A stretch of DNA of 63,708 bases, counting the filler, from Reticulomyxa filosa (Eukaryota; Protista; Foraminifera), in NCBI GenBank assembly GCA_000512085.1. It is 17 parts of 17 records of this genome, joined end to end, with 100 filler letters (N's around TTAATTAATTAA, not from the genome) between each part and the next. Parts side by side here need not be neighbours in the genome. Positions count along the whole stretch, not along the records: positions 32,007 to 51,333 come from ASPP01018909.1; 16 more parts are not named here. One strand, 5' to 3'. Shown in pieces: positions 32,007 through 51,879 of the stretch. Below the pieces are notes generated by a model, which worked only from the letters and a program-made list of their open reading frames with translations, ran no database searches and was not told the DNA's origin. Both the position numbers and the translations under genes were made by a program. Positions within the stretch are counted from its first letter, which is position 1, and every line of letters begins with the position of its first letter.

Positions 32007-32041
<35 letters not shown>

Positions 32042-32044
<3 letters not shown>

Positions 32045-34436
32045 GAAACACAAGCAGATGGTGGACTTGGCGCGTCACCTACATCCGGACCGTCGGGAAC
32101 AACATTGCAGTTTGGATTGCAAATGGGACAAGCAATGGGATTGAACAATGGTGGATCACAAGGAAGCGGAGGAGGAAATGGAGTACGAATAGGAGGAGGA
32201 GTAGGGGGAATAGGAGGAATAGGAGGAATAGGAGGAATTGGGGGAGTAGGAGTAGGAGTAGGAGTAGGAGTAGGAGGAAGAAGCGGCGGTGGAGGTGGAA
32301 GCAACGCGACAGTGAATAACGGACTACTGCTAAATGGAATGCCCACAGTGTCTGGGTTTTCTCCGATCCCGACGATGGTGAATTATGACAGCGGTGGCAA
32401 TGAAATGACTATGATGGACCCCAAGGCATATCCGTCCGACTATTGGATGCAATCGTCCTTCGCGATGCCAATATCGCAATACATGCCCATGGACTTTGGT
32501 ATGCAAGGCACCGGCGGCATGTATCCCACGGACACGTCGGGGCTTTACGGCATCAACTCGTACACGACAACAGATGACGTCATGTCATCACAGATGGCCA
32601 TGGGCGATTACAACAGCATGTCCATGATGTCCTCCGGAGGAGGAGGAGGAGGAGGCGGAGTAGGCATGGGTATGAACATGGGTATGGGAATGGGTATGAA
32701 TATGAACATGGGTATGGGCATGGGTATGAACATGGGATGGGCATGGGAGGAGTTGGAGAAAATGGGATAATGGGCCTTCGGACATGGGCAATCAGCAAAC
32801 ATCAGCATCGGGAAGACGACGACAAAAACAGCCTGGTGGACAGCGTATTAACTCGTCTACACGTAACTCTCGTCGTGGCAAGCAACATCAACAACAACAC
32901 CACCACAACCACAACCACAACCACCATCATCATCAACAACAACAACAACAACAACACCATCATCATCATTCCTCTTCTGGAAACGCCGGTACATCTTCCA
33001 ATCCCAATCGAAATGAGTCATCATCATCTTTGGATAGACATCCACACAAAGGACAGAACCAAATGCAAGTGCAGGGACAAGAGGGCCAGGGCCAGGGCCA
33101 CGAACAGGACAACGGACAGAATGTAGAGGCCAGTGACATGGGCATGACATTCGAACGGGAAAATGTGCCGCTAATGGACTTGGTGAAGAATGAGCTAATC
33201 GAAAAATGCGCGCGTGATCAACATGGATCGCGCTACATTCAAAGGGCTTTGGAAACGGCCACATTGGTGGAAAAGTCGGCCGTGTTCAAGCAGATTGAAA
33301 AATGCGCGCTCGGACTATGCGAAGATGTGTTTGGCAACTATGTCATTCAAAAGTTCTTTGAACATGGCACGGACAACCACAAAATCACATTGGCCAAGAT
33401 GCTCGTCGGACGAGTGCTGCCTTTGACCAAGTCCATGTATGGGTGTCGTGTCATTCAGAAAGCCTTGGAGTCGGTCGACCAGAACTTGCGAATTGCTTTG
33501 GTGAGCGAGTTGGATGGGCATGTGGAAGAGTGCGTGCGCGATCAAAATGGAAATCATGTCATTCAAAAAGCTATTGAGGAAGTGTCCCCGGAAAACTTGG
33601 ACTTTATTGTCAATACCTTCCATGGCAAGGTCTACGATTTTAGCACTCATCCCTATGGCTGTCGCGTCATCCAACGCTTGCTCGAACGATGCACTCTGGA
33701 ACAAAAGGAACCCTTGCTCCACGAAATCTTAAAACAGGTGTCCACATTGAGCAAAGATCAATACGGAAATTACGTCGTTCAACATATGCTGCAACACGGA
33801 ACCCCTAAAGTGCGCGCCACCATTATTGAAATTGTTGCCAACAATATCATCTCCATGTCGCGACAAAAATTCTCAAGGTATCTCAGAACATTTATATTTT
33901 CGTTCACAAACTTACTTATTTGTGTGTTTATTTATATATATGTACATATATAATACATACGTATATATAAATCTTTCAGTAACGTGGTTGAAAAATTGTT
34001 CACTCATTCCACTGATGAAGAAAAAGACTTTTTGATTGAACATATCATGGGATTCCAAAGCGAAGCGTTTAGAACTTGTTGTTTTTTTTTTTTTTTTTTT
34101 TTCCTCTCATGTTACTACTGTTCTTCATGAATATTACATTGATTTTCACACACATATATGCACAAAAAAAGACCTCCTATCGTTCAAATGGTAAGGGATC
34201 AATATGGCAATTATGTGATCCAAAAAATCTTGGAGGTTGCAAGTCCGCAACAGAGAAACAGATTAATCAACCGAATATTTGAACTTGTGCCAAACCTACG
34301 CAAACTTATGTTTGGTAAACACATTATCAACAAAATTGAACGTATTACTGGAAAGTTGAGTGATCCACAAAGCACTCCGGAAGAAGGGAGAAAAAAGAGA
34401 CACGTCAAAGAAAAAAAAATGCCAAAAGCCACGTAA
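32042..34436 (+). CDS. PUM: Pumilio/PUF RNA-binding protein; low-complexity G/M/Q/H N-terminus; introns 33878-33979 and 34067-34171
   Basis: Eight PUF repeats: DQHGSRYIQ, DVFGNYVIQ, YGCRVIQ, DQNGNHVIQ, HPYGCRVIQ, DQYGNYVVQ, KFSSNVVEK (spliced) and DQYGNYVIQ. The GT-AG introns restore the frame. Frameshifts near 32740-32785 in the repeat tract are probably read errors. Confidence 0.95.
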
Positions 34437-35223
34437 CGAGTGACAAACAAAAAACAAAAAATGAAAAAATGTGAACATGCAAAAATGAAAAGTTAAAACA
34501 AAAAAAAAGAGAGAATAATTGTGTGTTGTATATATAGCCAGTACAAATGAAGAGGAAAAAAACCATCGGTACAAAAGGTGTTTGTTTGCTTTTCTTTTTT
34601 TTTTGTTAGAGAATAAATGGACCTTGTCTCAGCTGGTTTTTTTCTTTTACCAAAATTAGAGCGCATACACTTTTCGTAATAAAATTTTTTTTTTTTTTTT
34701 TTTGTGTTGTTATGTTTTCGTGTATCAAAGCATGTTTTGTGAGAACTATTGCAATAAATTGCGTGTTTATATGTGCAACCCAGTAATATTTTGTATATGT
34801 GTGTAAAAACAAAGCTGTTGATCTAAGCATCTCTCGGTTAAATATTTGTATTTGTTTTTGTACTTTTACAAACAAAAAAAATACGGTGTACTTTGTCCAC
34901 ACTGTGATATGATTCATGCTTCTTTCTTTTTTTTTTTTAGTTCATTTTGTTGTGTTGTCTGGATGAGTTTTCAAAATTCCCTTTCCTCCCATGGCAAAAA
35001 GCAAAAGTGACTAATTTTTCATTATCACAATAAATCCCATTTTTTGTTTTTTTGTTGTCATTGCGGTTATTGTGCTTGACTTTTGAGAAACAGTTTTCAA
35101 TTTTATTCCTTGAAATTGCATCTTGGTTGATTTAAATATTCAATATTGTCTTCAATTGACTCATAAATATTCTCATAAAATCATTCACCGTAAAAGCAAT
35201 GGGGTTCCGATATAAGTGTAATA

Positions 35224-38176
35224 ATGGATACCGCTCTTACTCTCAAATGGCATAAAGATCAGCTGTACCTATTAAATTTAGAGGTAATACACATTGCTAA
35301 CTATGTTTTTATCTTTGCAAAGCATGGTATATGCTTGTTAAAAGTTCGATTCATTGTCTGAAGCCTCAGAGAAACCTGGCAATATGTCAGATTTGCTTGA
35401 TCTTTCTGAAGAGACTGATCAAAGTGCAGAGATTTTAGCCAACTCAAGTTTACTTTATGGCAAAGAAAAGAAGCATAAAAACAAAAGTAAAAATGAAAAA
35501 CAAAATGGCAAAAAATTTTCAAAGAATAATCTTAATTCTACAGGATCTAAATCCCCCCAGACCTCCAAATCGCAAGTAAAAGAAGGTAAGATGAATACCC
35601 AAAGCATTCCATCGAAAGAACTTGACGTGGAAAGTCCTCAAGGGGCCATCTTCAATCTCCAAAAAGATGAACTCAGCGAAGAGTTTAAAAACTTAAATAT
35701 TAACAAAGAAAGCAAATTGAATGCAACAGATAGTGCAGTCAACAATGATATAACAGCACTATCACTCTCCCAAAACATCTCAGAAAGTTTTGAGACCTTG
35801 TTGGCACAAATACAGAAGATGGATCACTCAAAGCCGTCAAGTAAAGAGTCGACACAATCACCAAAGCAACAATCTCCACATTGCACTCGAGCTATTGCAG
35901 AAACAACAAAAAAGTTAAATGACCTGTACAACTTCGGCTTGAAGAATTCGAACAAAAAGAGTGAAAAAAAAAGTAACGTTGCTAGTCAAATGAAAAATGA
36001 ATTTACCGACAAAAATCAACAAGCTTTATTCGAAACTATGGAGCCAGTAACAAACAGAGTAATTTCAGAGTCCCCTGCAAAAAAACAGCGGCAAGACAAC
36101 ACTAAGGGAAATAAATCAAATGTTGTCGATTTAAAGGATATCAATAATGGTAAAGCGGCAGACATCACTGTTGAAGAAAAAAAGATAGTGATCGAGGAAA
36201 GTAATTTTGTGTCACTTGAAAACTTGGACCTGTATATACACAATGCTCTATCAAGTGCATTACATACTTACCAATCAAAACTTTCAAACACTTGTCCACC
36301 GTTGGTGACCTCAAATATTAGTGATGGTGATTTTTGTCCCAAATCAAATAATCCTCCCTTGCTCAATCCGTCACTAGTGAACGCTGAGACAAGTTGCAAA
36401 ACTCAGACTAACCATTGCAATGTTAATCAGTCTCAAGTTCGAACAATGGACAATGAATTCCTTGACATTCCTATTCCAGTTGATCATCGCACAAAACTGT
36501 GGAATCACAAATTAGAATGGAACATAAATTTAATCAAGTCCAAAAAATGCATGATTGGGGGCGACCTGGCAAGGGCGTGTTGTGAAACGACGCGTTTAGA
36601 AAAAATGCTTAGCGAACAAAAATTGTTTCTACAAAATTCCTTTTTTTGGAACACTGAAAATCACAAGATTGCAGATTTTTTAAACGATTCGTGTTTATCT
36701 TCACGGACAACTGGTGTCAAAAACAAGCCTAATGTATTTGACGCATTGCATGCACAAGCACAAACTCTTCGCCGGTTTCAGACTAACAATAAACAAATTC
36801 CAAAGAACTACGGACTTCCTTCAAACGAGTATGTTGAAAAAATAGATAGTATAAAAGTACCACTTGGAACAAAAAGAAGGAGATCGCTACAATTAGTACG
36901 TTATTTTTATTTACACTTTTGAACTTCAATTTTTGCTTTTCCCTCTTGTCTTGTTGTAACAGTTTATTGACAACAATAAAATTTTCAGTTGTATAATATC
37001 TTAAGTCGTGGCAGTCAACAAATAATTGAAGAAGAATTTGTTAACGCGCTGGAAGAATATGTTTTAGCAGGTGTGAGTTTTACTACCAATGCTCGATACA
37101 GTACAAATAATTAGAAAACAAATTTAAAACAGAATTTGAAATCGATGAAGTCGACGTTTTAAAAGGATATTTACCAAAACTTTGGAATATTATTTTACGT
37201 TATGCACGCTATCATGAAAATTCTTCGCGGACCATTACATTTGCAAACTTTTCAAAGTTAATTCTACGCACAATCTCAACTTTTCCTTTGTCAAAAAAAA
37301 AAGGGGACATTGCATTATATATTGTACAATCTTGAACACAAGGCACGTTGCATTGGTTTTATATCGTGATTATTTTCTCGTTTTGTGTCGTAGCTACTGC
37401 AAATTTTTGGAAGGCTTGTTACAACCTTCTTCAAACGACGATGTTACAGTAATTCAATGTATGGACTTGCACGTGTATGCGTACTTGATATATGCTTGGC
37501 AAAAACCTCCTTGCATTGTGCAACAACAGATTCTGTGAACCCTGATGCATTTCGACTCGCACTAGTGCTACAAAGTCACATTGTCAGGACATATTCGCAC
37601 TGTAGAAAAGCAACAAAATTAGAAAGAGCTTCACAAAGTTCGAGCCGAAGTGCAAGGAGTGATGTTTTTAAAAACGACTCAAGCAGCAGTAGCGCAACTA
37701 CTATTTCTTCTTCTCCTCGCACAATAAATACCATGGAATCACAAAATACATTCGCATCGAATGACTTAGTATTTTCACGGTATAATCAACAAAAAAAACC
37801 ATTTCATTTGACATTTTGAACTTTTCAATGTTGCAATATTACAACAATCTGCATTTATTGTAGATTATATGAGCGAGGGAAGACCTTGCAAAAGAAGAGA
37901 GAAGAAATGATGCTGAAACAACTTCAACGCAGGGACGAAGACAAAGAATGCACTTTTCAGCCAAATATTTCTAAAAAATTAGTACGTTTCTTTGTTATTT
38001 AGGGAACACCAAAAAAAAAGACCAAACAAAAACAAAATTGTGCAAAACATCTAACATAACAGAAAAGTGCTAGAGCCAAACCAGGGAAGTATAGACCTTT
38101 GCGTATAAATTCAATATCTTCAAATAGCTACGCCAACAGATATAGTTTGTGCAACAGCAGTGTTAGTACAGTTTAA
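35224..38176 (+). CDS. Multi-exon hypothetical protein (low-complexity N-half; C-terminal ECTFQPNI motif, possibly cytoskeletal)
   Basis: ATG at 35224 and intron 35284-35344 join the 522-aa ORF in frame. Later exons read LYNILSRGSQQIIEEEFVNALE and YERGKTLQKKREEM..DKECTFQPNISKK. Later exon boundaries are approximate. Confidence 0.7.
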
Positions 38177-38565
38177 ATCGGACTATCGATAGACATTTTC
38201 AATCTTTTAACTCTGTAATAATTGCAATCCCAACTTCTTATTTGTCCAAAAATAATTTCTTATAGCCTCTAATTGGTTGCTTTGTTCATATCAAATGCAA
38301 AACAAGAAAACGCAAAATTTTGTCTTAAAACTATATTTTTGATCACTGTATCGATTGTTGCGTTATTAATGATGTCAAAAAAGGCATAAAAATTTTTCAA
38401 GCAATAAAACTAAATAAAAAATTGATTGAAGTGAACAGGAGAGAAGAAGAAAAAAAAGGGGACAAACAATTTTCAGAAAATTATTGAAAATGAACAAAAA
38501 AAAAAAGAAACAAAAGGTGAAGCATTTTATTTGTTAGGATTTTTAAGAAACGCCTCTACAAAAAT

Positions 38566-38635
38566 CACATGCAAATAGATCACGAAATTTCAGTTCCAAG
38601 AAAAAGTTCAAGGAAAAAAACTTCGATCATATGTG
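38566..38635 (-). promoter_or_regulatory. Candidate SECIS element in the 3' UTR of the selenoprotein gene
   Basis: Minus strand reads CACAT-AUGAU-CGAAGUUUUUUU-CC-UUGAACUUUUUCUU-GG-AACUGAAAUUUCG-UGAU-CUAUUUGC-AUGUG. This gives helix I, an AUGA/UGA non-Watson-Crick quartet and helix II, about 250-315 nt after the stop codon. Confidence 0.7.
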
Positions 38636-38880
38636 TTGAGACGAGTTCAATTTATCAAAGTCATTTTTTTTTCCAAAAAGTTGTAAAAAAAAAAGACAAA
38701 TAAAAACCCCAACAAAAGAGAAAATGCATAAACCAAAATATTCCTTTTTTTTTTAATAAAAAGTATGTACTTTTTTAATGGTGGGCATCCGATGTTGACA
38801 AGACATCTCTTAACCTATAAAAAAAGGACAATTCCCCAAAAAAAATCCCCTTTAATAAAAGTTCATTTTTTTTTTTAGAG

Positions 38881-39635
38881 TTACCTGGATCGGTGGATAA
38901 ATCGTTTAATCAACGGATTGAATCGACTACAAAGGTAAACGACTACCAAAAATATAACAATCTGCAAAATAAAAGTGGCATTGATCCAGAGATTAGAAAC
39001 TTGTTGGGTCCGGGTTTTAGACTCATTGATCAACTTATCTACAAAATTTGCTTGCGGAACAGTGGGCACTTTTTTTTCGTCCACGTTCCGTGCAACAATG
39101 TGGTTGATTTCTTGGCCTTCTTTTTTGGGTTCTTTCTTTGGAAAGTATTTGGAAAACAAGTCGTGCAATTCTTTTTGTCCGCTGCTATGTTTTGCCAAGT
39201 CGATTGACTTACCAACTTGATTCTTCATTGCAGCGTCTGAATAGAGACTGACAACCAAACAAATTTGATTTTTAAGTGGATAGTTTTTTTCAAAAAAAAG
39301 GGTTACATTCACCCCCTTTGTCTCTCCAAAAAAATTTGTTTTTTGTTACGTTACATGAGCTCTGGATCGTGCCCACCAATCCACTCTATGGTTACGTGGT
39401 CGTATTTAACGACACCTTTGTCTCCTTTGAGGAACGACCGAACCTCCGGGAGACGGTTCAATCGTCACCCTGGACATGACTTAATCTTTCCGTAGTACGT
39501 GGTACTCGCACCACTTTGATTTGCGCCCTCACTTTCACCATTAACGAGTGGAAGTTGAGACAAACAAAGAAGGAATAGAAATAGAGTGTATAACACTCCA
39601 ACAAGTCTTGGGGCACATTGCAAATGCCCACTCAT
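38881..39635 (-). CDS. SELENOM: Selenoprotein M / Sep15 family protein, 215 aa, Sec at codon 57 (TGA 39467-39465); exons 39635-39355 and 39247-38881
   Basis: Hydrophobic signal peptide, then GKIKSCPG-U-RLNRLPEVRSFL..VTIEWIGGHDPELI/LYSD..SIDL, matching the SelM CxxU-xLNRLxEVxxF and GxDPEL motifs. A phase-2 GT-AG intron keeps the frame (281+367=648 nt). C-terminal hydrophobic helix ATFILQIVIFLVVVYL. Confidence 0.9.
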
Positions 39636-40311
39636 CTTTCCCAATTCTACCCCCTTTCTAAAAAAACGCCTAGCTTTTTCCCAACTGCAGAAACACTTGT
39701 AACAAAAATTTAGATCGAATGCCAGTATCTAATTTGCCCTTTTTGCAGTTTTTTCTTTTTTGATTTTGAGTACTTATCTAAAAGATCAACTTCCTTCGTT
39801 CATTTAATATGAATAACAAAAGAAGTACAAAAATCGTTGTCAGATATACAATTTGATTTGATCATTTTGTTGGCATTAATCAAATTTTTCTGGATGTTAT
39901 AACATATGCGGACAATAAATTAAGTGTTTATTCATTTTCAGTTATTCATATCCTTCATAATCGTACAACAGCAAAAATTTATTACATTCTATTAATTTGA
40001 ATATAATTTTGTCAAAAGCATCAATCCATACTAATTTTATCTTTAAAGTTTGAATCCAATGTTGAATAACAAATTTTATTTTATTTTTTGACTGTCATTG
40101 TTTATTATAATTCGATCAAATAAGAATGAATTTTATGTGGTAATAACATATCCTAAATTTCTACAATTAAAAAAAAAGAGAAAAAGCAATAATGATAGTT
40201 GTGTATTAATTTGTGTTATCTCTTCTCTCATCAAATAATTTTTAATTTTAATTGAGAACAAAGTATTCAACAAAAATACTTAAAGATGAATTTTATTCAC
40301 AAATAAAAAAA

Positions 40312-43300
40312 TCAAAATTTTCCACCACGTTGTTTCGCAAGCAATTTTTGTTGACCTTCCAAACCCTTTGTGTTCTTCCAAATGCTGTCTTTCATTGATA
40401 GACCACTTTGAATGCCTACTCTCCAAATATTATCAATCACGCTAGCTTTAGTAATATCATCAATTTTACCATTATCACTGCGCCATAGTCGAATTGTTTT
40501 ATCACTAGAACATGACACTAGTTTTGAATCATCGTGTGATAAACATATAGCATTGATACTCCCATTATGTCCTTCTAATGCTTGAATTTGTTTTCCTGAA
40601 GACACATCCCATATTCGAATAATTTTATCTTCTGAATAAGAAAGTAGTTTAGAACCACCTAATGAAAATTTTATTTCTCGTATAAAATCAGAATGTCCTT
40701 TAAGTATTTGCATTTGTTTTCCAGTCGATATATCCCACAGTCGAATTGTGGTATCTTTTAAACAAGACGCAATTGTAGTACCGTCCGGAGAAAGTAGCAT
40801 TTCATTTATATTCTTTTTATTTTCTTCTAATAATAAAATTTGCTTTCCAGATGATATATCCCATACAATTATCTTTTCCCGTGAACATGATACAAATTTA
40901 GAACCATCTGGAAAAAGTTCTATTCTAAATATAAAATTTTTATGTCCTTTAAATATTCGAACTTGTTTCCCAGATAATGCATCCCATAATCTAATTGTAT
41001 AATCCTGTGAATGAGATAGAATTTTATTTCCATCTGGCAAAAACTGTGCGTCAATTATCAACTCTGAATGTCCACTCAATAATTGAATTTGTCTTCCTGA
41101 CGATATATCCCATATTCGAATTTTTTTATCATATGAACATGACACAAGTTTGGAACCATCTGGTGAAAATCGCACTTTATTGATTGGCTCTGGATGTCCT
41201 TCCAATAATTGAAGTTGCTTTCCTGGTAATACGTCCCATAATCGGATTTTATCCAATGAATATGATACAATTTTAAAACCATCTGGTGAAAATGATACTC
41301 CTCCTATATAATCGGAATGATCTTCAAGTACTTGAATTTGCTTTCCTGATTGTACATCCCACAACCGCATTGTTTTCGCAGAAGCTGATAAAATTTTAGA
41401 ATCATCAGGAGAAAATAATACTGTTGTTATAACATCTATATATCCTTCTGTTAATTGAATTTTTCTTTCTAAAGATATATCCCATATTCGAATAGTACCA
41501 TCATTTGAACATGACAAAATTTTGGATTCCCTTGGAAGAAATTCCACACCAGTAATATTTGCTGAATGTCCTTCTAACATTTGAATTTGTTTTCCAGACG
41601 ATATATCCCATAGTCTAATGGTACCATCTTGTGAACCGGATACAATTCTAGAACCATCAAATGAAAATTTTGCTGTACTTACAAAATTTGCCTCTTCTAG
41701 AACTTGCAGTTGTTTTCCAGACAACAAATCCCATATCCGAATTGTTTTATCTTCTGCATATGACAACATTCTTGAATCATCTGGTAATAATTGAATTCCA
41801 CGTACATAATCTGTATGACCTTCAAATATTTGAATTTGTTGCCCCGATAATGTATCGTGTATTACAATAGTTGTATCTCCTCCGTATGATACAACCTTTG
41901 ATCCATCGGATATTAATTGCACTCCTTTCAGTCCATATTCATGTCCGAATGATAGAATTTTTGTTCCAGAAGATGCATCCCATATAATGCATTCACGCTC
42001 TGAACATGAAAGAATTTTAGAATCATTTGAAAAAAATTTCGACATTATGAAAAAATCTGAATGTCCATAACATGATTGAATTTTTTCTCCAGAAGATACA
42101 CTCCATATTCGGATAATATTTTCATTTGAGCAAGATACAACTTTAGAAGCATCTGATGAAAATTCTGCTGAATTCACAGCCTCTGGTAGTCTATCAAACA
42201 ACCGAATTTGTTGACCTAATAATACATCCCATACTTGAATAGTTTTGTCCAATGCACACGATACAATTTTAGAACCATCATGTGAAAAATGAACTTTCTT
42301 TATTGGTGCTGAATATTTCAGAACATGGAGTTGTTTTCTTGATGATGTGTCCCATATTCGAATTGTTTTATCGATTGAATAAGATGCAATTTTTGTCCAA
42401 TCGGGTGAGAATATAATACCAGTTACTTCATTTGAATGTCCTTCTAAATGTGCATATTCTCCAAAGTAAATGTTATTCATTGATGCATTTGTAAAATTGG
42501 CCTTGCTCAAGCAAGTTTGATAAAAACGCACATTATCCAAATTTGCATTGCTAAAATTAGTTCCTTCGAGAAATGCATGGTCCAAAATTGCATAAGGGAT
42601 TTTTATATTACTCCAATCTTTGGAGTGCATGTTCACATTTGCTGAATTGAGTATGGTAATTGCATTTGCTGCTGCAATACTAACATCTTCACTATTCTTT
42701 GATGCTTCAATGATCCGAAATAATCTTGATTGTAGATTTGTGAATATTGGATTATTGTCATGAATTCTTTCTGCAATAAAGTGAACAATACTTAGTTCTT
42801 CATTTAATAACTTATGGTTGATAGATAATTGTTTAACACATGTTTCAAATTGTTCTTGAAATTGTTGATTATTGACAGTGGCAATATCTGGTTTCCACGA
42901 AAGAATGTCAAATATAATTTTTTGTGCAGCATAATATTCTTGACATGATTTATGTAAAAATTGATATTTGTTATCACCAACTCTTCTCAATACATATTTC
43001 GCAATACTGTCACCATGGAAATATTTTCCCCATGTATCTGAAACTGATATTTTAGTATCATTTACTTTTGCTCTTTTTGATATATTTTCAGCCACATCAT
43101 CACCATAAAAGTATTTTTTCCAGACACTATGTGTTTTTGAAACTGAAGTATCAATTTTATTCACTTTAAATTCTGCTTTATCATCATCATCTTTGATCTC
43201 TCTCTCAATTGTTAAATCCAATTTACCCCAAAGAGTTTCAAAGCTATATCCTTTATAGTCATTTTCTGTTGCAACTTGGTTTCCTTGCATAAACATTTCA

Positions 43301-46180
43301 AATCCTAGATTTTGACAATATTGTTGAAATGCCAATTTGATTTTTTTGGGATTTGTTTGAATTCTTAATTCTGATAATTTATTTGAAATATTTTTCACAT
43401 GAATATCAATCCATTGTTCATTGAATGCTTCATATACTTGTGATTTTGATATTTTAGTTCCAATAGAATGCTGTTTCATTAATGATGGTAATACAGTTAA
43501 TATCATTCGAAGAAAAAATGGTTCTTCCATCATTTTATTCAAATTTGGATAATTTTGCAATGTTTCTTCGTATTGTTTTGTTGTCCAATCCAAATTATCA
43601 GTTATTTTATTTTTGTTATTCATTTTCACAAATTTATCAATGTACCCATTTACTTGTCCTTTTGAAAAAGGCCACAAGTGTATCATTGGTATTGTTGCTG
43701 TTATGTTTTTTGAACCAATTAAAACACGTTGAATATCTCCATCATTTAGTACATGACTTCGACATGTTACCATTATTTTTGCATTCCACTCATTTAAATT
43801 GAATCTATCATAAAAATATTTTTCATTATTATTTTTATCATATTTATCAAATATTTCATCAAATCCATCCAAAATAAATACAAATGAAATATTTTCACGA
43901 ATAACATCCATCATCTCTTTATTGATTTGTTTCATTTGTAGAGCGTGAGAAATGGTTTGTTTTTCATTTAATTCATTATAGCATTTTGGTAATGAAATAT
44001 AAACAGGAATGGGTGTTGTAAAACTATTTACATGTGCTTCCCATAATACCTCTTCCAAATGACGACAGAATAAACTTTTGCCTGATCCTGACTTCCCTTG
44101 TAATATTATCACTTGTTGCTGTTTTTGTTCTTCGCTTTTTTTCTCTTCTTTTTCTTTTTCTTCTGCTAACAAATCAATGATATGTTGATAACAATCATAT
44201 GAACTATTATTTTTATTATCATCATTGTCAGTATATGGATAATTATTTGCTTGTAATGGTATGTACATTTCAAGTGCTTGTAACATTGTTGTATCTTCTT
44301 CTAATTCTTGTTTTCTTGATTCCCTTAATATAGATATAATATCAGCATAGCTTGCTGGATTCTTTTCACCCATAATATGTCTTTTGAAGTATTCAAATAA
44401 AACCGCATAAATAGCTTGTCCTTTCGCTTCCTTTGGATTGAATTTACAAAGCTGATCATACACAAATTTAATCAATTTTAACGTGATATCATTTTTAGCA
44501 TTGACCTCTTCTTCATTTATTCCTTTTAGTTGTGGTGGTTTCAATATTCGAATTTCTGAATGTGGTTTGTAATGATTTGCAATTTTTTTGATTTCTTTTT
44601 TATCAATCCATTCACAAATTATATCATTGATCTTTGTCAATGTTTCGTCACTTGCTTGTTTTAATTCTTCTTCTAATGAGTTATTTGGTTTCCATGCTCG
44701 AATGTATTCATAAAATAAATGACTTAATTTTGGATTTTCAATGACAGTATATCCTTCCAATGTTGTAAAATTCTTCAATGTTGCTTGCATTTCAATATAT
44801 ACGTCATGCTTTGGAACGTATAATTTAATATTATGGAATCGATGATGTGTCTTTGACTGTTTATCAAAGAAGTCTTTATCTTCAGACACAATTAAATTGA
44901 ATTGTTCTGCCTTTTTCATCACTGCAACTGCAGTTTGTAATTTAGTAGGATTATCACATAAAATAGTAAATCTTCCAATATCAAACGCTTGATTAAAATC
45001 ACCACCATAATCTGCTTGAATCTTTTCCAATAATCTTTCATTCCCTTTCAAACTTGATGGTTTCACGACTGTAATTTCATACTTTTGTAATTCAGTCACT
45101 AAATTTTTTATTTCAATACTATTCATTGCATGTTCACTCCTTTCTCTCAAATCTTCAATACTCTGTGCATGTTGTCTTATTTTGTTTGCCTTCAATTCAT
45201 ATGACAGTCCAGATTTGATTGTATACGAACATTGATAGTTATTGTCCTTCACAGGTATTAAATCACCACTTGCACAAATGGAGTGTTCCGAGTTATAAAA
45301 CATGGCTTTGACAATTAGATTGACAGTTGATTTCTTGCAATCAGGACAGCTAAATAATGCTTTGTCTGATATAAATGTAGTATTGCCAAATCCAACATTC
45401 ACCCATACTAGTAATTTGGCTTTTGATACCAAACAGATTTCATTGTTGCAATATCCTTGCAAATTAATTCCCGGTTTTGTTTCTCCAACTTCTGTTTTTT
45501 CCGCTTCCTTTTGTACGCTTTTATTATTTCCATTAATTTCATTCACTACATTTCCTTGTTCTTGTTTCTATTCATTATTCAAACAAACAAGAAAAAAGTA
45601 AAATTGAATGTCATGAAACAGACAAATAAAATAAATTTGTTATTACCTGTTCTACATTCTCCAATTTATTATTGCTTTTGTGATCTGTTTCTAATTTATC
45701 CTATTTTTTTTTTTGTAGATTAATACAAATAGAATGAAAGAGCATATTGTATATGTGCATATTTATTATTATTATTTCAATACCTCTTTTTCGACAAATT
45801 GTTGGACAATTTCTTTAATCACAAATTCAATATTTCCGTTATGATGTACTATTTTCTTTTGCAACTCTTCTCCATTAATCGCATCTCCAAACAACCGCAC
45901 TAATGTTTTTATTTCCTTTACATATTTTCGATCTTTTTCGTCCGTGTCATTGTAATTGTTGTTGTTGTCTTGCATGCCCCCGTTGAATTTTATCTTTCCT
46001 ATTGAAATACAGTTTAACAGTAGTTCTTTCGTTTCATAAAATATATATGTCATCATAACTTGTATTTTGAGAATAAACAGGAAATATTCCAAGTGGTGCG
46101 CCACTGTTAATATCTCCGTGATATCCTATCGAGTCTACTACCATTGATAGCGTAGCGAAAGGATGAACATCATTTGCCAT
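40312..46180 (-). CDS. STAND/NLR-like protein: CUE/UBA-like, 4-Cys domain, RelA/SpoT-like nucleotidyltransferase, NACHT, pentapeptide repeats, 16 WD40; exons ~46180-45784, 45700-45647, 45567-40312
   Basis: Walker A ILQGKSGSGKS, Walker B FILDGFDE, sensor-1 IMVTCR, winged-helix FLHKSCQEY, pentapeptides AFLEG TNFSN ANLDN, and 16 WD-type repeats. Two phase-0 GT-AG introns (45568-45646, 45701-45783) extend the 1744-aa ORF upstream. One frameshift near 46040. Confidence 0.93.
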
Positions 46181-47767
46181 TATCTTTTTTTTATTTTGTG
46201 ACAAAAAAAAGATATAAGAATACAAATTTTTTTTTTTTCCTTTATCAAAAAAAAAAAAAAAAGGCATGGATTCATAAACCAAAAAGTGAAACCAACTTCA
46301 AGGCATTTCATCTTGTTTCCTTTGCTGTATCACAATTACGTAGCTTTCCTAAAAATAGTATGTACAATTTTTTGAAGGGCACAAAGAGGGGTGAAAAAAA
46401 ATCATTGCATATTGGGTACAATTTCACGAGAGAGCTAAAAAAAAAAAAAGGACTTTCTCTTTGCCAAATCTCGAAATGAATTTGGTTTCTTCAAATACCT
46501 ATTGTAAACAAGGCACAAAGCAAAGCTTGTTTGTTGTGTTTTCTTCAAATTTACAAACAAGGGTAAAAGAGCACGTCCTATGAAACTGTCCGTTTTTTTT
46601 AAAGCGTCAAAAGGCAGGGAAAAAAATACAGAACAAAGATGCTCGTTGTAGTAGTGAGCTGACAAATGCGTTAAGACACACAGAATAGCAGGTATCTTGT
46701 ATGCAAGTAGCAAGAGATTGATTTGAGGACGCAAAACTGCCCACAAAGTTCGAAAAGGGAGAAGTTACATACAAACTGAAAAAAACACGTTCTTTCTTTT
46801 GTTTAGAAAAAGGATATCACGAAAATCAAATGTACGAATAATTCGGTTATTTAGAAAAAAAAAAATTTTTCCCTTTCGATTATTTCATCAAAAAAAGTTT
46901 CCTTTGGACACAAATAATCCGAGATTATTCAAAACAAATCAAATCTAACAACAATTTACAAAATCAAATTTTTAATATTTACGCTAATGAGTTTATAATT
47001 TTAGTCTTGAAATGTACTTTTGCTCACTATTTTTGTTAATGTGTATTTGCACATAACAAAAACAAAGCGGGCAAGTTGCAACTGTGTACAACATTTTGAA
47101 AATTAGAAAATAGCTCCATTACTTTGAAAAAAAAATAGATTCAAAGAAATTTCACTACCATAAAGGGCTTCATTTGAAATTCGTTGTTCCTTTATAACAA
47201 AAAAAAACACTTGAAGCATTTTTACTTTCTTATTTTTTTTTGCTCAAAAAATTACACGAATTATTTTACATTATTTAGTGTTGCAGTAGTTATTGCTTTT
47301 GGTTACAGATTGAAAAATTTCTTTCTATTCTAGAGTCATGGATGCATACTTGAATGCATTGCAATACTTTTAATGAGCTAATTTAATTTTCTTGTGAAAC
47401 AAAAAAAAAATTTTCTCACGCAGATTGTGTACATACAATAAAATGCAGTTAAAAGAATAGCAAGTCCAAACAATTATCAAACATTGAACTCGAATATTAA
47501 ACATTAAATTAGGATGGATCCAGGATTTTGACATACTTATTGTTAAATATATTAGCTTATCTGTTTTTATTTTATGTAATAAAAATATTTATTTGCTTCT
47601 TACAATTTAATACATGCAATTAGCTTTTTTATTTTTGAGATGTTTCGTTCAATGTTAAAAAATATTAAAAACAACAAATTAATATTTATGTACATTTTAT
47701 CAATTAAATATTCGCAAACAAATAAAGAAAAAAACATAAAAGAAAAACTTAACATTATTTTTTTTTT

Positions 47768-50700
47768 GTTCAAGGGTTGGTTACCCGTTGGAGGCGATAC
47801 GGATAGCGTGGGGCCTTGGTGGCATATAATACACATCAAATATTATTTAAAAAAATAAAAATAAATAAAAAAACTTAACATATTATTCTTTTTGTTCAAG
47901 GGTTTAGGTACCCGTTGGATGCAAAGCGAAGTCGTTGGTGCCTTGGTGGCCTGTAAAACAAATCAAATATTATTTAAAAGATAAAAAAAAAAAAATAAAG
48001 ACTTAACATATTTTTTTTTATTGACACAGGTTGTCACCCGTTGTAGCGCGCACGGTGGGCTGTTGGAGCTAGATGGCCTATAAAACATACAAAAAATTAT
48101 TATAAAAAGAAAAAAATATATACCTTTTTTTTGTTTACTGGTTGGTGCACCCGTTGGAGCATCGGCTGGCGTTGGTGAGCCTTGTTGGATATACAACAAA
48201 TTAAACATCATTAATAAAATTAAAAAAACATGAAACAAAAGCATATTTTTTTTTTCTAATGGACACGGGTTGTGCACCCGTTGGATGAGCTTTGGGCGTT
48301 GGGCCTTGGGGCCTACAAAACACATCTAACGTCATAAAAAAAATAAAAAAAATAAAAAAAAAACTTAACATTTTTTTTATTTTTAGTTCAAGGGTTATTT
48401 ACCCGTTGGAGCAGCGGCTGGAGTTGGTGGGCCTTGGTGACCTATAAAACAAATTAAATATTATTTAAAAAAGAAAAAAAGAAAAACTTAACATTTTTTT
48501 TTTTTTTGTACACGGGTTGGGAACACGTTGGAGCTGTGGTAGGATGTGGTGGTGCCTTGGCGGCCTATAAAACACAACAAGCGTCATTAAAAAAATAAAA
48601 AAACAAATAAAAAAAACATAACTTTATTTTTTTTTAATAGACACAGGTTGGGAGCGCGTGCGGTGGGCTTTGGGGTCTAGGTGGCCTATAAAATATACAA
48701 AACACCATTAAAAAAAGAAAAAAACAAAAAAAAAAACATAACATTATTTTTATTTTTTGTTCACGGGTTGGTGCACCCGTTGGAGCAGCGGCGGGAGTTG
48801 GTGGGCCTTGGTGGCCTATACAACACATCAAACATCATTAAAAAAATTAAAAAAACATAAAACAAAAACATAACTTTTTTTTTAAAATTGACAAGGGTCG
48901 GGAACCCGTTGGAGGATGAGCGGTGGGCATTGGGGCCTCGGTGGCCTATAAAACAAATCAAACGTCATTAAAAAAATAAAAAAATAAAAAAAAAAAACTC
49001 AACATCATTATTTTTTTTTTGTTCACGGTTGGGTACCCGTTGGAGGCGATGCGGAGTGCGTGGGGTCTTGGTGGCATATAATACACATCAAATATTATTT
49101 AAAAAAATAAAAAAACATAAAAAAAACTTAACATATTATTTTTTTTTTGTTCACGGGTTTAGGTACCCGTTGGAGGCGAGGCGAGGTCGTTGGGGCCTTG
49201 GTGGCCTATAAAACACATCTAACGTCATAAAAAAAATAAAAAAAAGAAAACAAAGACTTAACAATTTTTTAATTTTTAGTTCACGGGTTAGGTACCCGTT
49301 GGAGCATTGGCTGGAGTGTGAGTGGCCTTGTTAGCCTATAAAACATGACACCATTAATTAGTAATACAAATAATATGAAACAAAACATACTTTTTTTTAT
49401 TATTGGACACGGATTTGGACCCGTTGGATATTGAGAGGTGGGTATTGTGACCTTGGTGGCCTATAGAACAAATTAACATCATTAAGAAAAATAAAAAACA
49501 TTTGAAGTAATTTAACTTTATTTTTTTATTTTGGTCCACGGGCTTTGGTACCAGTTGTAGCAGCGGCAGTAGCGGGGTAGGCCTTGGTGGCCTATGAAAC
49601 ACAAAAATTATTAAATGAAAAAAAATATAAAACAAAAACATACTTTTTTTCTATTGTGTACACGGGTTGGGTACCCGTTGGAAGAGTTTCGTTGGTCGTT
49701 GGTAGCCTATAAAACATAACAAACGTCGTTAAAAAAAAAAATTATAAAACATAAACATACCTTTTTTTTTTTAATGGATACAGGTTGGTGCACCCGTTGG
49801 AAATGGAACGGTTGGAGTGGGACCTGCTTTGGTTACCTATAAAACATAACAACCTTAATTAAATATTTAAAAACATATAACAAAACATACTTTTTATTAT
49901 TATTATTGACACGGGTTTGGTCCCCGTTGGATGAGGAGCGGTGGTCATTGTGAATTCATTGGCCTATAGGACAAATAAACATCATTAATAAAAGAAAGAA
50001 ACTTAAAAAAAAACTTAACATTATTATTTTTTTTTGTTCACGGGTTGGGTACCCGTTGGATGCAATATGGGTTGCGTGGGGCATTGATGGTCTATAAGAC
50101 ACATTAAACGTCATTAAAAAAAATACAAAACATAAAAAGAAACTTAACATATTATTTTTTTTTTGTTCAAGGGTTTGGGTTCCCGTTGGAGCAGCGGCGT
50201 GAGTGTGTGGGGCATTTGTGACCTGTGCAACAAATCAAAAATTATTAAATGAAAAAAAACATAAAACAGAAACATACTTTTTTTTTCTATTGTATACAAG
50301 TGTTGGTTACCCGTTGGAAGAGTAGCGTTGGTCCTTGTTGGCCTATAAAACAAATCTAACGTCATTTAAAAAAATATAAAAAAAGAAAACAAAAACTTAA
50401 CTTTTTTTTATTTTTGTTACGGGTTAGGTACCCGTTGGAGCATCGTTGGTAATGTGATTGGCCTTGGTTGCCTATGAAACATGACGACCATTAATTAGTT
50501 CTAAAAATAATATGAAATATAGCATACTTTTTTTATTATTATTGGGCACAAGTTTGGACCCGTTGTATATGGATGTGGTCATTGGGACCTTGGTGGCCTA
50601 TATAACAAATTAAACATCATTAAGAAAATATAAGACATGAAAAGGAAGTTAACTTTATTTATTTATTTTGGTCCACAGGTTTTGGTACCCGTTGTAGCAG

Positions 50701-51195
50701 CGGCAGTAGTGTGTAATGTGCCTTGGTGGCCTGTAAAACAAATCAAAAATTATTAAATGAAAAAAATATAAAACAGAAATATACTTTTTTTTCTATGGTG
50801 TACACGGGTTGGTTACCCGTTGGAAGAGTTGCGTTGGTAGCCTATAAAACATAACAAACATCATTAAAAGTAAAAACATAAAACAGAAACATACCTTTTT
50901 TTTTTTAATGGACACGGGCTGGTGCACCTGTTGGAGAATGAGCGTTGGTAGCTGGGCCTTGGTGGCCTATAATAAGCATCAAACGTGATTGGAAAAAAAA
51001 AAAAAGCATAAATAAAAAACTTAACATTTTTTTTTATTTTTGTTCATGGGTTGAGTACCCGTTGGAGCAGCAGTAGTGTGTTGTGATGGGTGCTTGATGA
51101 TCTATGAAATGTTGCAAACATCATTAAAAAAGAAAATGACAAAAATAATGCTAAACTTTTTTGACGGCCATATGCCGGCTGCTGCTCGTTGGAGC
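47768..51195 (-). repeat. Tandem array of 27 (plus 1 degenerate) ~125-bp units: a GC core of about 36-55 nt plus an AT-rich intron-like spacer
   Basis: Plus-strand consensus is GTTCACGGGTTGGGTACCCGTTGGA-[~17-22 nt variable]-GCCTTGGTGGCCTATAAAACA..CATTA(A)n..CTTAACA/CATAC(T)n. Units start at about 47768, 47894, 48022, 48133 ... 50910, 51042. Confidence 0.95.
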
Positions 51196-51879
51196 GTGTT
51201 TTGATCATCGGTGTTCATTAAAATAATGACCCCGATTTAACCAATGCATTGCATTGATTGGTCAGACCCCGGTTTCGTGTTCACTGGGGTCGATTTGTCT
51301 GGCTCCTGTAAATTCACACACATTATTTTAGATNNNNNNNNNNNNNNNNNNNNNNNNNNNNNNNNNNNNNNNNNNNNTTAATTAATTAANNNNNNNNNNN
51401 NNNNNNNNNNNNNNNNNNNNNNNNNNNNNNNNNACTTTGAATGCAAACTGACTCAATAGTGAAAACGCGTGCAGAAGAAACAGCCCGAAACAATATCTGA
51501 AAATCTGGAAATGGCATCCTCCCCCCCCTCCCTCCATCCTTCTTTGAATTATCAGTCGATGAATAGATCGAGCATGGTGATTATCGAAGACACACATGCG
51601 CAAGACAACGAGTTTGAATTGAATCATCGGTTTACCGCCATCAGTAAAGATTGAAAAAAAGTTGAAATCAAAACGAGTTGTTGATATGGGGAAGCATTAT
51701 CGTGTTGAAGTAGCTGTAGAACGAACAGGTTTATTTTAATTATCATTTATCATTTATAAATGGACAAATGACATAATAATAAAATATATGCATATATATA
51801 TATATATACATATATGAAAGTAATCAATAGAAATGAAAGTATTGGATAAAGTACTCGCTCAAGGCCATGATAGCAAAAG

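Follow-up and report, generated by a model that had tools for sequence, protein, structure and literature searches.

A RelA/SpoT-homologue domain close to the Tas1/Apk1 toxins in the effector position of a NACHT-WD40 protein family of the foraminifer Reticulomyxa filosa

The stretch of DNA analysed here, called the window (63,708 nucleotides (nt), filler included), joins 17 parts of 17 records of the genome of the foraminifer Reticulomyxa filosa (GenBank assembly GCA_000512085.1). Contig ASPP01018909.1 accounts for positions 32007-51333 (19,327 bases) and carries, on its minus strand, the gene RFI_21712, whose product combines, from N- to C-terminus, a cysteine-rich domain (Cys4), a RelA/SpoT-homologue (RSH) pyrophosphokinase domain, a linker, a NACHT NTPase, pentapeptide repeats and WD40 repeats (Table 1). 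We address here the homology, predicted structure and conservation of the RSH domain, and the function that it could have as the effector of a STAND/NLR-type (NOD-like receptor) protein.

The first-pass annotation of the window had worked on a minus-strand open reading frame (ORF) of 1744 amino acids (aa), found at 40312..45546 in the ORF listing. This ORF does exist and corresponds, with a 100% match, to the last 1744 of the 1842 residues of the GenBank protein RFI_21712 (P0002), but the GTG with which it opens is not the start of the gene: the annotated start is the ATG at 45975, and two short exons lie upstream. Both introns, within 45568-45975 (minus strand), are short and AT-rich, and a possible alternative donor (CAG/GTAATA) is present inside exon 2, so that the annotated exon 2-3 junction may be wrong. 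Residues are numbered below as in the 1744-aa ORF, unless domain numbering is specified.

The RelA/SpoT synthetase motifs read by the first-pass annotation are found at their place and in their order when the domain is aligned by profile with solved RSH enzymes. LKGNERLLEK aligns with the basic donor-phosphate helix, FDIGR with the Mg-binding Asp motif, KDFF..THHRFHN with KDYI..GYRSLH, IEMQ with EIQ and SHLFY with the H..Y motif. Pfam RelA_SpoT (PF04607) is the top match for the N-terminal 480 residues (17.4 bits, E 0.0055) and reaches 21.0 bits (E 4.3e-4) with the domain alone, for a gathering cut-off of 27 bits. The same family matches 45 of the 46 paralogous domain copies at E<=1 (best 4.2e-7), and one paralogue, RFI_08856 (P0001), is over the cut-off with 30.2 bits. 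The N-terminal 480 aa match no defence-system family in PADLOC and, in PHROGs, nothing but one weak family of unknown function; NCBIfam gives no meaningful match.

Two profiles were used to place the domain among known enzymes. The first (A1), built from R. filosa paralogous copies only, has Tas1 (6OX6) as its sole significant chain in the PDB (E 0.0048), with an alignment that spans the basic helix and the Asp motif. An exhaustive HMMER search with A1 gives 91 matches among 1.84 billion cluster representatives, and the strong matches that were traced to their source are for the most part R. filosa proteins. The distant matches have E values of 1e-9 to 1e-3; two of them, P0101 (40.6 bits) and P0113 (30 bits), themselves pass Pfam RelA_SpoT, and others are C-terminal domains in proteins whose N-terminal region is of the eCIS-core, phage MuF, DUF4781 or DUF285 type, which is the arrangement of bacterial polymorphic toxins. 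No fungal protein is identified among the 91 matches, the origins of which were checked only in part. Two close homologues come from outside the R. filosa assembly, P0067 (ENA contig of 1581 nt; 234 bits) and P0083 (whole-genome-shotgun (WGS) entry AAFX01; 104 bits), which may be from other foraminifera or environmental relatives.

The second, bridged profile is drawn from a wide alignment of 31 sequences, R. filosa and distant copies together (A2). Its best match in the PDB is again Tas1 (4.5e-28; 101.7 bits), followed by YwaC/SAS2 (3.1e-11), YjbM/SAS1 (6e-8), RelP (3e-7), RelSeq (7e-6) and E. coli RelA (about 2e-3), while no CapRel or FaRel2 chain matches at E<=1. By this comparison of sequences the domain is closer to Tas1/Apk1 than to the housekeeping small alarmone synthetases (SAS) or the long RSH enzymes.

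An AlphaFold2 (AF2) model of the domain, built from the paralogue alignment without templates, has a mean predicted local distance difference test (pLDDT) score of 85.6. When it is compared to the PDB with Foldseek, Tas1 comes first (8.5e-8), and all 50 of the 50 matches listed are RSH enzymes (E 8.5e-8 to 3e-4). Tas1 is also the best match with VIA-align (Z 13.1 over 172 residues, root-mean-square deviation 3.8, 20% identity); it is followed by SAS2 (12.8), SAS1 (12.6), RelP (12.2), Rel (11.7), an exported Streptomyces synthetase (11.1) and CapRel (10.4). Altogether, eleven RSH entries have Z values of 13.1-8.5, and other nucleotidyltransferases do not exceed 8.1. The domain thus has the fold of RSH synthetases, in which helices flank a central mixed beta-sheet, and can be superposed on solved RSH enzymes; the RelA/SpoT-like fold proposed by the first-pass annotation is recovered by profile as well as by structure, at a level far above chance. 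Among the matches of Atlas searches are bacterial clusters that bear RelA_SpoT. The AF2 model of 44527-45189 also resembles unannotated clusters of Nucleocytoviricota (giant viruses) and diatoms in the ESM Atlas, with template modelling (TM) scores of 0.62-0.65.

Conservation was then considered at the level of single residues. Eight columns are invariant in A2, K48, R52, K56, D70, R73, E133, Q135 and Y160 in domain numbering, which correspond to K167, R171, K175, D189, R192, E252, Q254 and Y279 of the ORF; E55, Y61, G63, K105, H157 and R164 (domain numbering) are nearly invariant. Across the 46 R. filosa copies, K167, D189 and R192 are found in 46/46 and R171, K175, E252 and Q254 in 45/46, and all eight donor-ATP/catalytic residues, Y279 included, are retained in 44-46 copies. 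The first seven, K167 to Q254, are aligned to counterparts in Tas1 and YwaC. In the FaRel2-APCPP structure, obtained with a Y128F variant, the donor ATP is bound through its triphosphate by basic residues and through its adenine by two Arg, which stack on it, and by a Glu and a Gln of beta5, which read it, while Mg2+ is held by an Asp (PMC11782079). The first-pass annotation had taken D189 and E252 for two metal-binding acidic residues. Both are indeed kept, in the window copy as in the paralogues, but the Glu contacts the donor base in FaRel2, and not the metal.

The same annotation had noted that the Gly-Tyr of the acceptor loop and the Arg of ExQxRT are altered, and these two changes turn out to be of different kinds. 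The Arg-Thr after ExQ is absent from Tas1 and from the whole Tas1-like family, R. filosa copies included; its loss is common to the Tas1-like clade and is thus not peculiar to RFI_21712. The replacement of Gly-Tyr by His-His is, in A2, the only one of the two that is specific to R. filosa; position 235 is His in 40 of the 46 copies and Tyr in 4. As the Tyr of this loop touches the acceptor base in FaRel2 and in alarmone synthetases (PMC11782079), an enzyme with a His-His loop may differ in its acceptor or its rate.

Evolutionary constraint was estimated from pairwise Nei-Gojobori medians of the ratio of non-synonymous to synonymous substitution rates (dN/dS) among the window gene and six paralogues (seven genes; dS about 0.8-1.5), several saturated pairs being dropped, so that the figures are rough. 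The lowest value of six regions is that of the RSH core (residues 160-285), 0.145, for a dS of about 1.1. It is 0.18 for the RSH region as a whole (residues 120-300), 0.23 for the Cys-rich domain, 0.26 for NACHT, 0.28 for the region after NACHT and 0.30 for the linker (residues 301-480). These results show that, within the N-terminal two thirds of the protein, constraint is strongest on the enzyme core, and that the domain is under strong purifying selection.

Table 1. Features of RFI_21712 in the window (residues in ORF numbering; Asp189, His234-His235 and Glu252-Met-Gln254 belong to the RSH domain).
Feature	Residues	Positions	Strand	Basis and remarks
Gene RFI_21712 (P0002, 1842 aa, three exons)		40312..45975	-	Translation mapped against P0002
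Exon 1		45975-45784	-	Exon mapping against P0002
Intron 1 (83 nt, GT-AG)		45783-45701	-	Exon mapping against P0002
Exon 2		45700-45620	-	Exon mapping against P0002
Intron 2 (52 nt, GT-AG)		45619-45568	-	Exon mapping against P0002
Exon 3, stop included		45567-40312	-	Exon mapping against P0002
Cys-rich all-beta domain (Cys4)	20-125	45172..45489	-	A3, AF2; CX4C...CX2C at C33, C38, C67, C70
RSH (toxSYNTH-like) pyrophosphokinase domain	120-340	44527..45189	-	Pfam, AF2, Foldseek, VIA-align, profiles
Motif block quoted by the first-pass annotation	166-283	44698-45054	-	
Asp189 of FDIGR	189	44980..44982	-	Tas1 KDLAR alignment; matches the Mg-holding catalytic Asp (FaRel2 D90; Tas1 chain position 306)
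His234-His235, beta3-beta4 acceptor loop ('G-loop')	234-235	44842..44847	-	A2: THHRF against family consensus GYRD
Glu252-Met-Gln254, ExQ motif on beta5	252-254	44785..44793	-	Aligned to Tas1 EIQ and YwaC EIQ
Linker between RSH and NACHT	341-478	44113..44526	-	Without Pfam family
NACHT NTPase	479-639	43630..44112	-	Pfam NACHT, 37.6 bits (cut-off 26.7)
Walker A GKSGSGKS		44074-44097	-	Motif location
Walker B VFILDGFDE		43855-43881	-	Motif location
Pentapeptide-repeat stretch	988-1020	42487..42585	-	Pfam Pentapeptide, 31.5 bits (cut-off 20.2)
16 WD40 repeats	1025-1689	40480..42474	-	Pfam WD40, E 5.8e-113 (15 stretches); 16 units of 41-42 aa

The domains that follow the enzyme are those of a STAND receptor, as the first-pass annotation had stated when it put the RSH domain, as effector, before NACHT, pentapeptide and 16 WD40 repeats: the Pfam matches to the three families and the 16 repeat units agree with this order. 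The Walker A and B motifs of NACHT are both intact. The 16 WD40 repeats would be enough for two beta-propellers; their repeat-to-repeat identity is 42% on average (range 24-62%), and their variability peaks at repeat positions 14-21 and 34, in the loops that follow the GH dipeptide and precede the Asp. These repeats are not near-identical, in contrast to the WD40 repeats of some fungal NLRs.

The Cys4 domain, of about 100 residues, directly precedes the RSH domain in all 59 copies recovered. In an alignment of 48 copies (A3), C14, C19 and C51 are invariant and C48 is present in at least 90%. Its AF2 model (pLDDT 92.1) is a beta sandwich, for which no convincing relative is found in the PDB, the best VIA-align Z being 6.2 (generic beta sandwiches and cupins) and no Foldseek match reaching E<=0.001; Pfam gives sub-threshold zinc-ribbon matches only. 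All these matches are too weak to place Cys4 among the zinc ribbons or the cupins. The Atlas clusters nearest to it in language-model features consist of eukaryotic hypothetical proteins, with rotifers as their most common source (score 0.94), which is to be taken as a lead only.

RFI_21712 belongs to a large family. At least 56 paralogues are present, as 56 R. filosa proteins of 959-1990 aa carry the N-terminal module at 33-100% coverage, and dozens of further copies are fragmentary predictions. Outside the catalytic residues, the paralogous RSH domains diverge to 59% identity. P0001 contains the Cys4 and RSH module twice in tandem, at residues 20-340 and 402-722, before NACHT, and Cys4 is present in both; the two domains thus duplicate as one unit. 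In another paralogue, annotated as a 'vcbs repeat-containing protein' (P0050; L008 3001-6054), the module lies at residues 600-927, after an N-terminal region of about 600 aa without Pfam matches. That this protein represents an architecture devoid of NACHT was considered and rejected: the gene stops 27 nt short of the contig end, so that any NACHT part is probably cut off.

As to the rest of the 19-kb contig, the ORF at 32784-33953 (plus strand, 389 aa) encodes a Pumilio-family (PUF) RNA-binding repeat protein (Pfam PUF, 2.6e-61), and the contig end that carries it is richer in G+C (44-49%) than the remainder (about 30%). The ORF at 35354-36922 (plus strand, 522 aa) has no family above threshold, and its match to a putative aminopeptidase is weak (18.5 bits). 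Bacterial contamination as the origin of RFI_21712 is rejected, given its GT-AG introns, the PUF-repeat neighbour on the R. filosa contig and the large R. filosa family.

The closest solved relative of the RSH domain, by profile as by structure, is Tas1/Apk1, the type VI toxin of Pseudomonas aeruginosa. They have in common a compact D-x-x-R, an E-x-Q without Arg-Thr, an H..Y..R and a small helical region after the core. Tas1/Apk1 pyrophosphorylates AMP, ADP and ATP and kills through ATP depletion, and Apk2, fused to MuF, acts like it but more mildly (PMC10083569). Both are secreted toxins that have a delivery domain (PAAR or MuF) and whose immunity protein is separate, whereas in R. filosa, a eukaryote, the domain is joined in cis to Cys4, NACHT and WD40 and has His-His instead of Gly-Tyr in its loop. 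The toxin context, that is a PAAR, MuF, eCIS or LXG delivery domain, is not found, the domain being internal to a NACHT-WD40 protein, and no cognate immunity protein gene is present on the 19-kb contig, Tis1-like and hydrolase genes elsewhere in the genome not having been searched for.

SAS1 (RelQ, YjbM), SAS2 (RelP, YwaC) and the long RSH enzymes share the fold and the catalytic motifs (Z 12.8-8.5; E 3e-11 to 2e-3). They differ by their GYxSxH and ExQxRT motifs and their guanine acceptors; these motifs are absent from RFI_21712, as are the tetramerisation through C-terminal helices of SAS and the HD, TGS and ACT domains of the long enzymes. CapRel(SJ46) is a fused toxin-antitoxin, a tRNA pyrophosphokinase that senses phage capsid. 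It resembles the R. filosa protein by its structural match and by having a toxSYNTH domain with a sensor in cis, used in abortive defence; it differs by the lack of any detectable sequence relation at the profile level, by its sensor, a small pseudo-zinc-finger instead of NACHT-WD40, and by its tRNA target.

The same domain order is met in fungi, and the parallel drawn by the first-pass annotation with fungal STAND receptors corresponds to a published class. Twelve categories of N-terminal effector are distinguished among fungal NLRs, RelA_SpoT being one of them, Gaeumannomyces graminis is recorded as having RELA_SPOT-NACHT-WD40 proteins, and the fungal domain is classed with enzymatic direct effectors, having been known earlier only from bacteria and chloroplasts (PMC4986451). 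It is a canonical but rare NLR domain in Sordariales (PMC12258605). Fungal and R. filosa proteins alike form multi-copy, variable families in filamentous or syncytial hosts. However, RelA_SpoT makes up less than 1% of annotated fungal NLR N-terminal domains (PMC4986451), as against the paralogues counted above, and the R. filosa family belongs to the Rhizaria/Foraminifera lineage and has, unlike fungal NLRs, an extra Cys4 beta sandwich before the enzyme. The searchable literature contains no mention of RelA_SpoT-NACHT-WD40 in Reticulomyxa and no link of NLR RelA_SpoT domains to (p)ppApp synthetases.

A quick maximum-likelihood tree of A2 places the R. filosa copies in one clade (SH-like approximate likelihood ratio test, SH-aLRT, 99), with which P0101, P0102 and P0126 are grouped at a moderate SH-aLRT of 87, the bacterial toxin-type domains being outside; this tree is unrooted, based on short sequences and contains several long branches, and is thus a lead only. 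In the metagenomic sequences, the Tas1-like domain is joined to TPR repeats in P0101 (L002 508-2025) and to ankyrin repeats and NACHT in P0102 and P0126 (L001 2745-6257). Over the metagenomic set P0101, P0102, P0123, P0126 and P0142, the partners are ankyrin and NACHT or TPR_10/TPR_12, with a C1 domain in one case. A homologue search with P0126 (Ank-RSH-NACHT) retrieves only itself.

Taken together, our results support the overall interpretation of the first-pass annotation. We consider it probable that RFI_21712 is a STAND/NLR-type protein with a Tas1/Apk1-like RSH domain as its effector, which would most likely make (p)ppApp with collapse of the ATP pool. By analogy with other STAND/NLR proteins, binding of a ligand to the WD40 propellers would lead NACHT to oligomerise, and the RSH domains, brought together or released by this oligomerisation, would hence become active. 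With ATP as donor of its beta-gamma pyrophosphate, the active domains would pyrophosphorylate an acceptor at its 3'-OH. Adenine nucleotides are the most likely acceptors, their use yielding (p)ppApp and collapsing the ATP pool. ATP collapse could then cause arrest or death of the affected cytoplasm, in a response of defence or allorecognition, that is, of putative non-self recognition, whose outcome would parallel that of the NADase or pore-forming effectors of other NLRs. A more specific version, in which a domesticated Tas1/Apk1-type toxin would serve as NLR executioner, acting on adenine or on a new acceptor selected by His-His, with Cys4 as its regulator in cis, is possible but considerably more tentative.

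Several points weigh against this (p)ppApp-making effector. The window copy stays under the Pfam RelA_SpoT cut-off (17-21 bits against 27). Structural comparison does not separate Tas1 from the SAS enzymes that make (p)ppGpp, which all lie within 1 Z unit of it. In RFI_21712 a His takes the place of the loop Tyr through which known enzymes contact the acceptor base, so that the acceptor or the rate may differ. The Apk1 homologues are of mixed specificity, so that membership of the clade does not fix the product, and both the oligomerisation trigger and the role in defence or allorecognition are carried over from other NLRs. The idea of the first-pass annotation that the altered motif hints at a non-GTP acceptor is subject to the same balance: it fits the nearest solved relative, Tas1/Apk1, which is a (p)ppApp synthetase, but (p)ppGpp makers are found among the Apk1 homologues. 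The sequence proximity to Tas1 makes adenine nucleotides more probable than the tRNA or guanine options.

Other activities can be envisaged for the same fold. The domain could be a tRNA 3'-CCA pyrophosphokinase like CapRel, FaRel2 and PhRel2, and shut down translation instead of depleting ATP. In addition to the structural match with CapRel (Z 10.4 over 178 aligned residues; Foldseek 8e-6), the tRNA-targeting toxic SAS (toxSAS) have the same core fold and also an adenine acceptor (PMC11782079), the altered acceptor loop would permit a non-nucleotide acceptor, and the control of CapRel in cis by its pseudo-zinc-finger has a possible equivalent in the Cys4 domain that adjoins RSH in the 59 copies. 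We nevertheless find this quite unlikely: the CapRel and FaRel2 chains escape the family profile that reaches 4.5e-28 with Tas1, FaRel has a Z of only 5.8, Cys4 is a beta sandwich N-terminal to the enzyme with no detectable relation to solved folds, and (p)ppApp is what Tas1/Apk1 and the MuF-fused Apk2, the relatives whose activity has been tested, make (PMC10083569). A product such as (p)ppGpp or another nucleotide could alternatively serve as a signal for a downstream effector, or as a weapon against eaten or hosted bacteria, rather than as a suicide device. (p)ppGpp-specific and promiscuous, dual-specificity exported enzymes do exist among the Apk1 homologues (PMC12691689), SAS1, SAS2 and RelP come as close as Tas1 by structure, and manipulation of prokaryotic signalling has been suggested for fungal domains (Dyrka et al. 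2014; PMC4986451). Such a signal is unlikely, however, when it is considered that the sequence is far nearer Tas1 than the (p)ppGpp synthetases (3e-11 or weaker), that the nearest relatives are toxin-type C-terminal domains, and that no partner receptor or hydrolase gene is present on the 19-kb contig, whose other ORFs are the PUF-repeat gene and unassigned ones.

It could finally be asked whether the domain has any activity at all, or is a catalytically silent relic that the receptor retains for scaffolding or oligomerisation alone. The change of Gly-Tyr to His-His and the score of the window copy below the Pfam cut-off would be in line with such a relic. Yet nearly every copy retains the donor-ATP and catalytic residues while the rest of the domain diverges, and it is in the catalytic core that dN/dS is lowest, which both argue against a silent scaffold; moreover, four copies retain Tyr at the loop position, and a His might also stack on a base. 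We therefore hold this explanation to be very unlikely.

NLR-type receptors of animals, plants, fungi and bacteria reuse a few death-dealing effector domains, many of which are shared with bacterial toxins. The RelA_SpoT-NACHT-WD40 order has been known from fungal NLRs since 2014 (PMC4986451), and R. filosa is a new eukaryotic lineage for it, in which the architecture has two variant features, an accompanying Cys4 domain and His-His in the acceptor loop. Our results place this architecture in a distant supergroup, Rhizaria, where it is present in at least 56 copies, and raise the question of whether the fusion was inherited by fungi and foraminifera or assembled independently. By tying the RelA_SpoT effector of NLRs to the Tas1/Apk1 toxins, whose chemistry is known, they also lead to a concrete hypothesis on its function and suggest that alarmone-type nucleotide chemistry may operate in the cell-autonomous defence of eukaryotes. 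If this is true, (p)ppApp-type chemistry and ATP collapse would constitute a eukaryotic mechanism of immunity or allorecognition.

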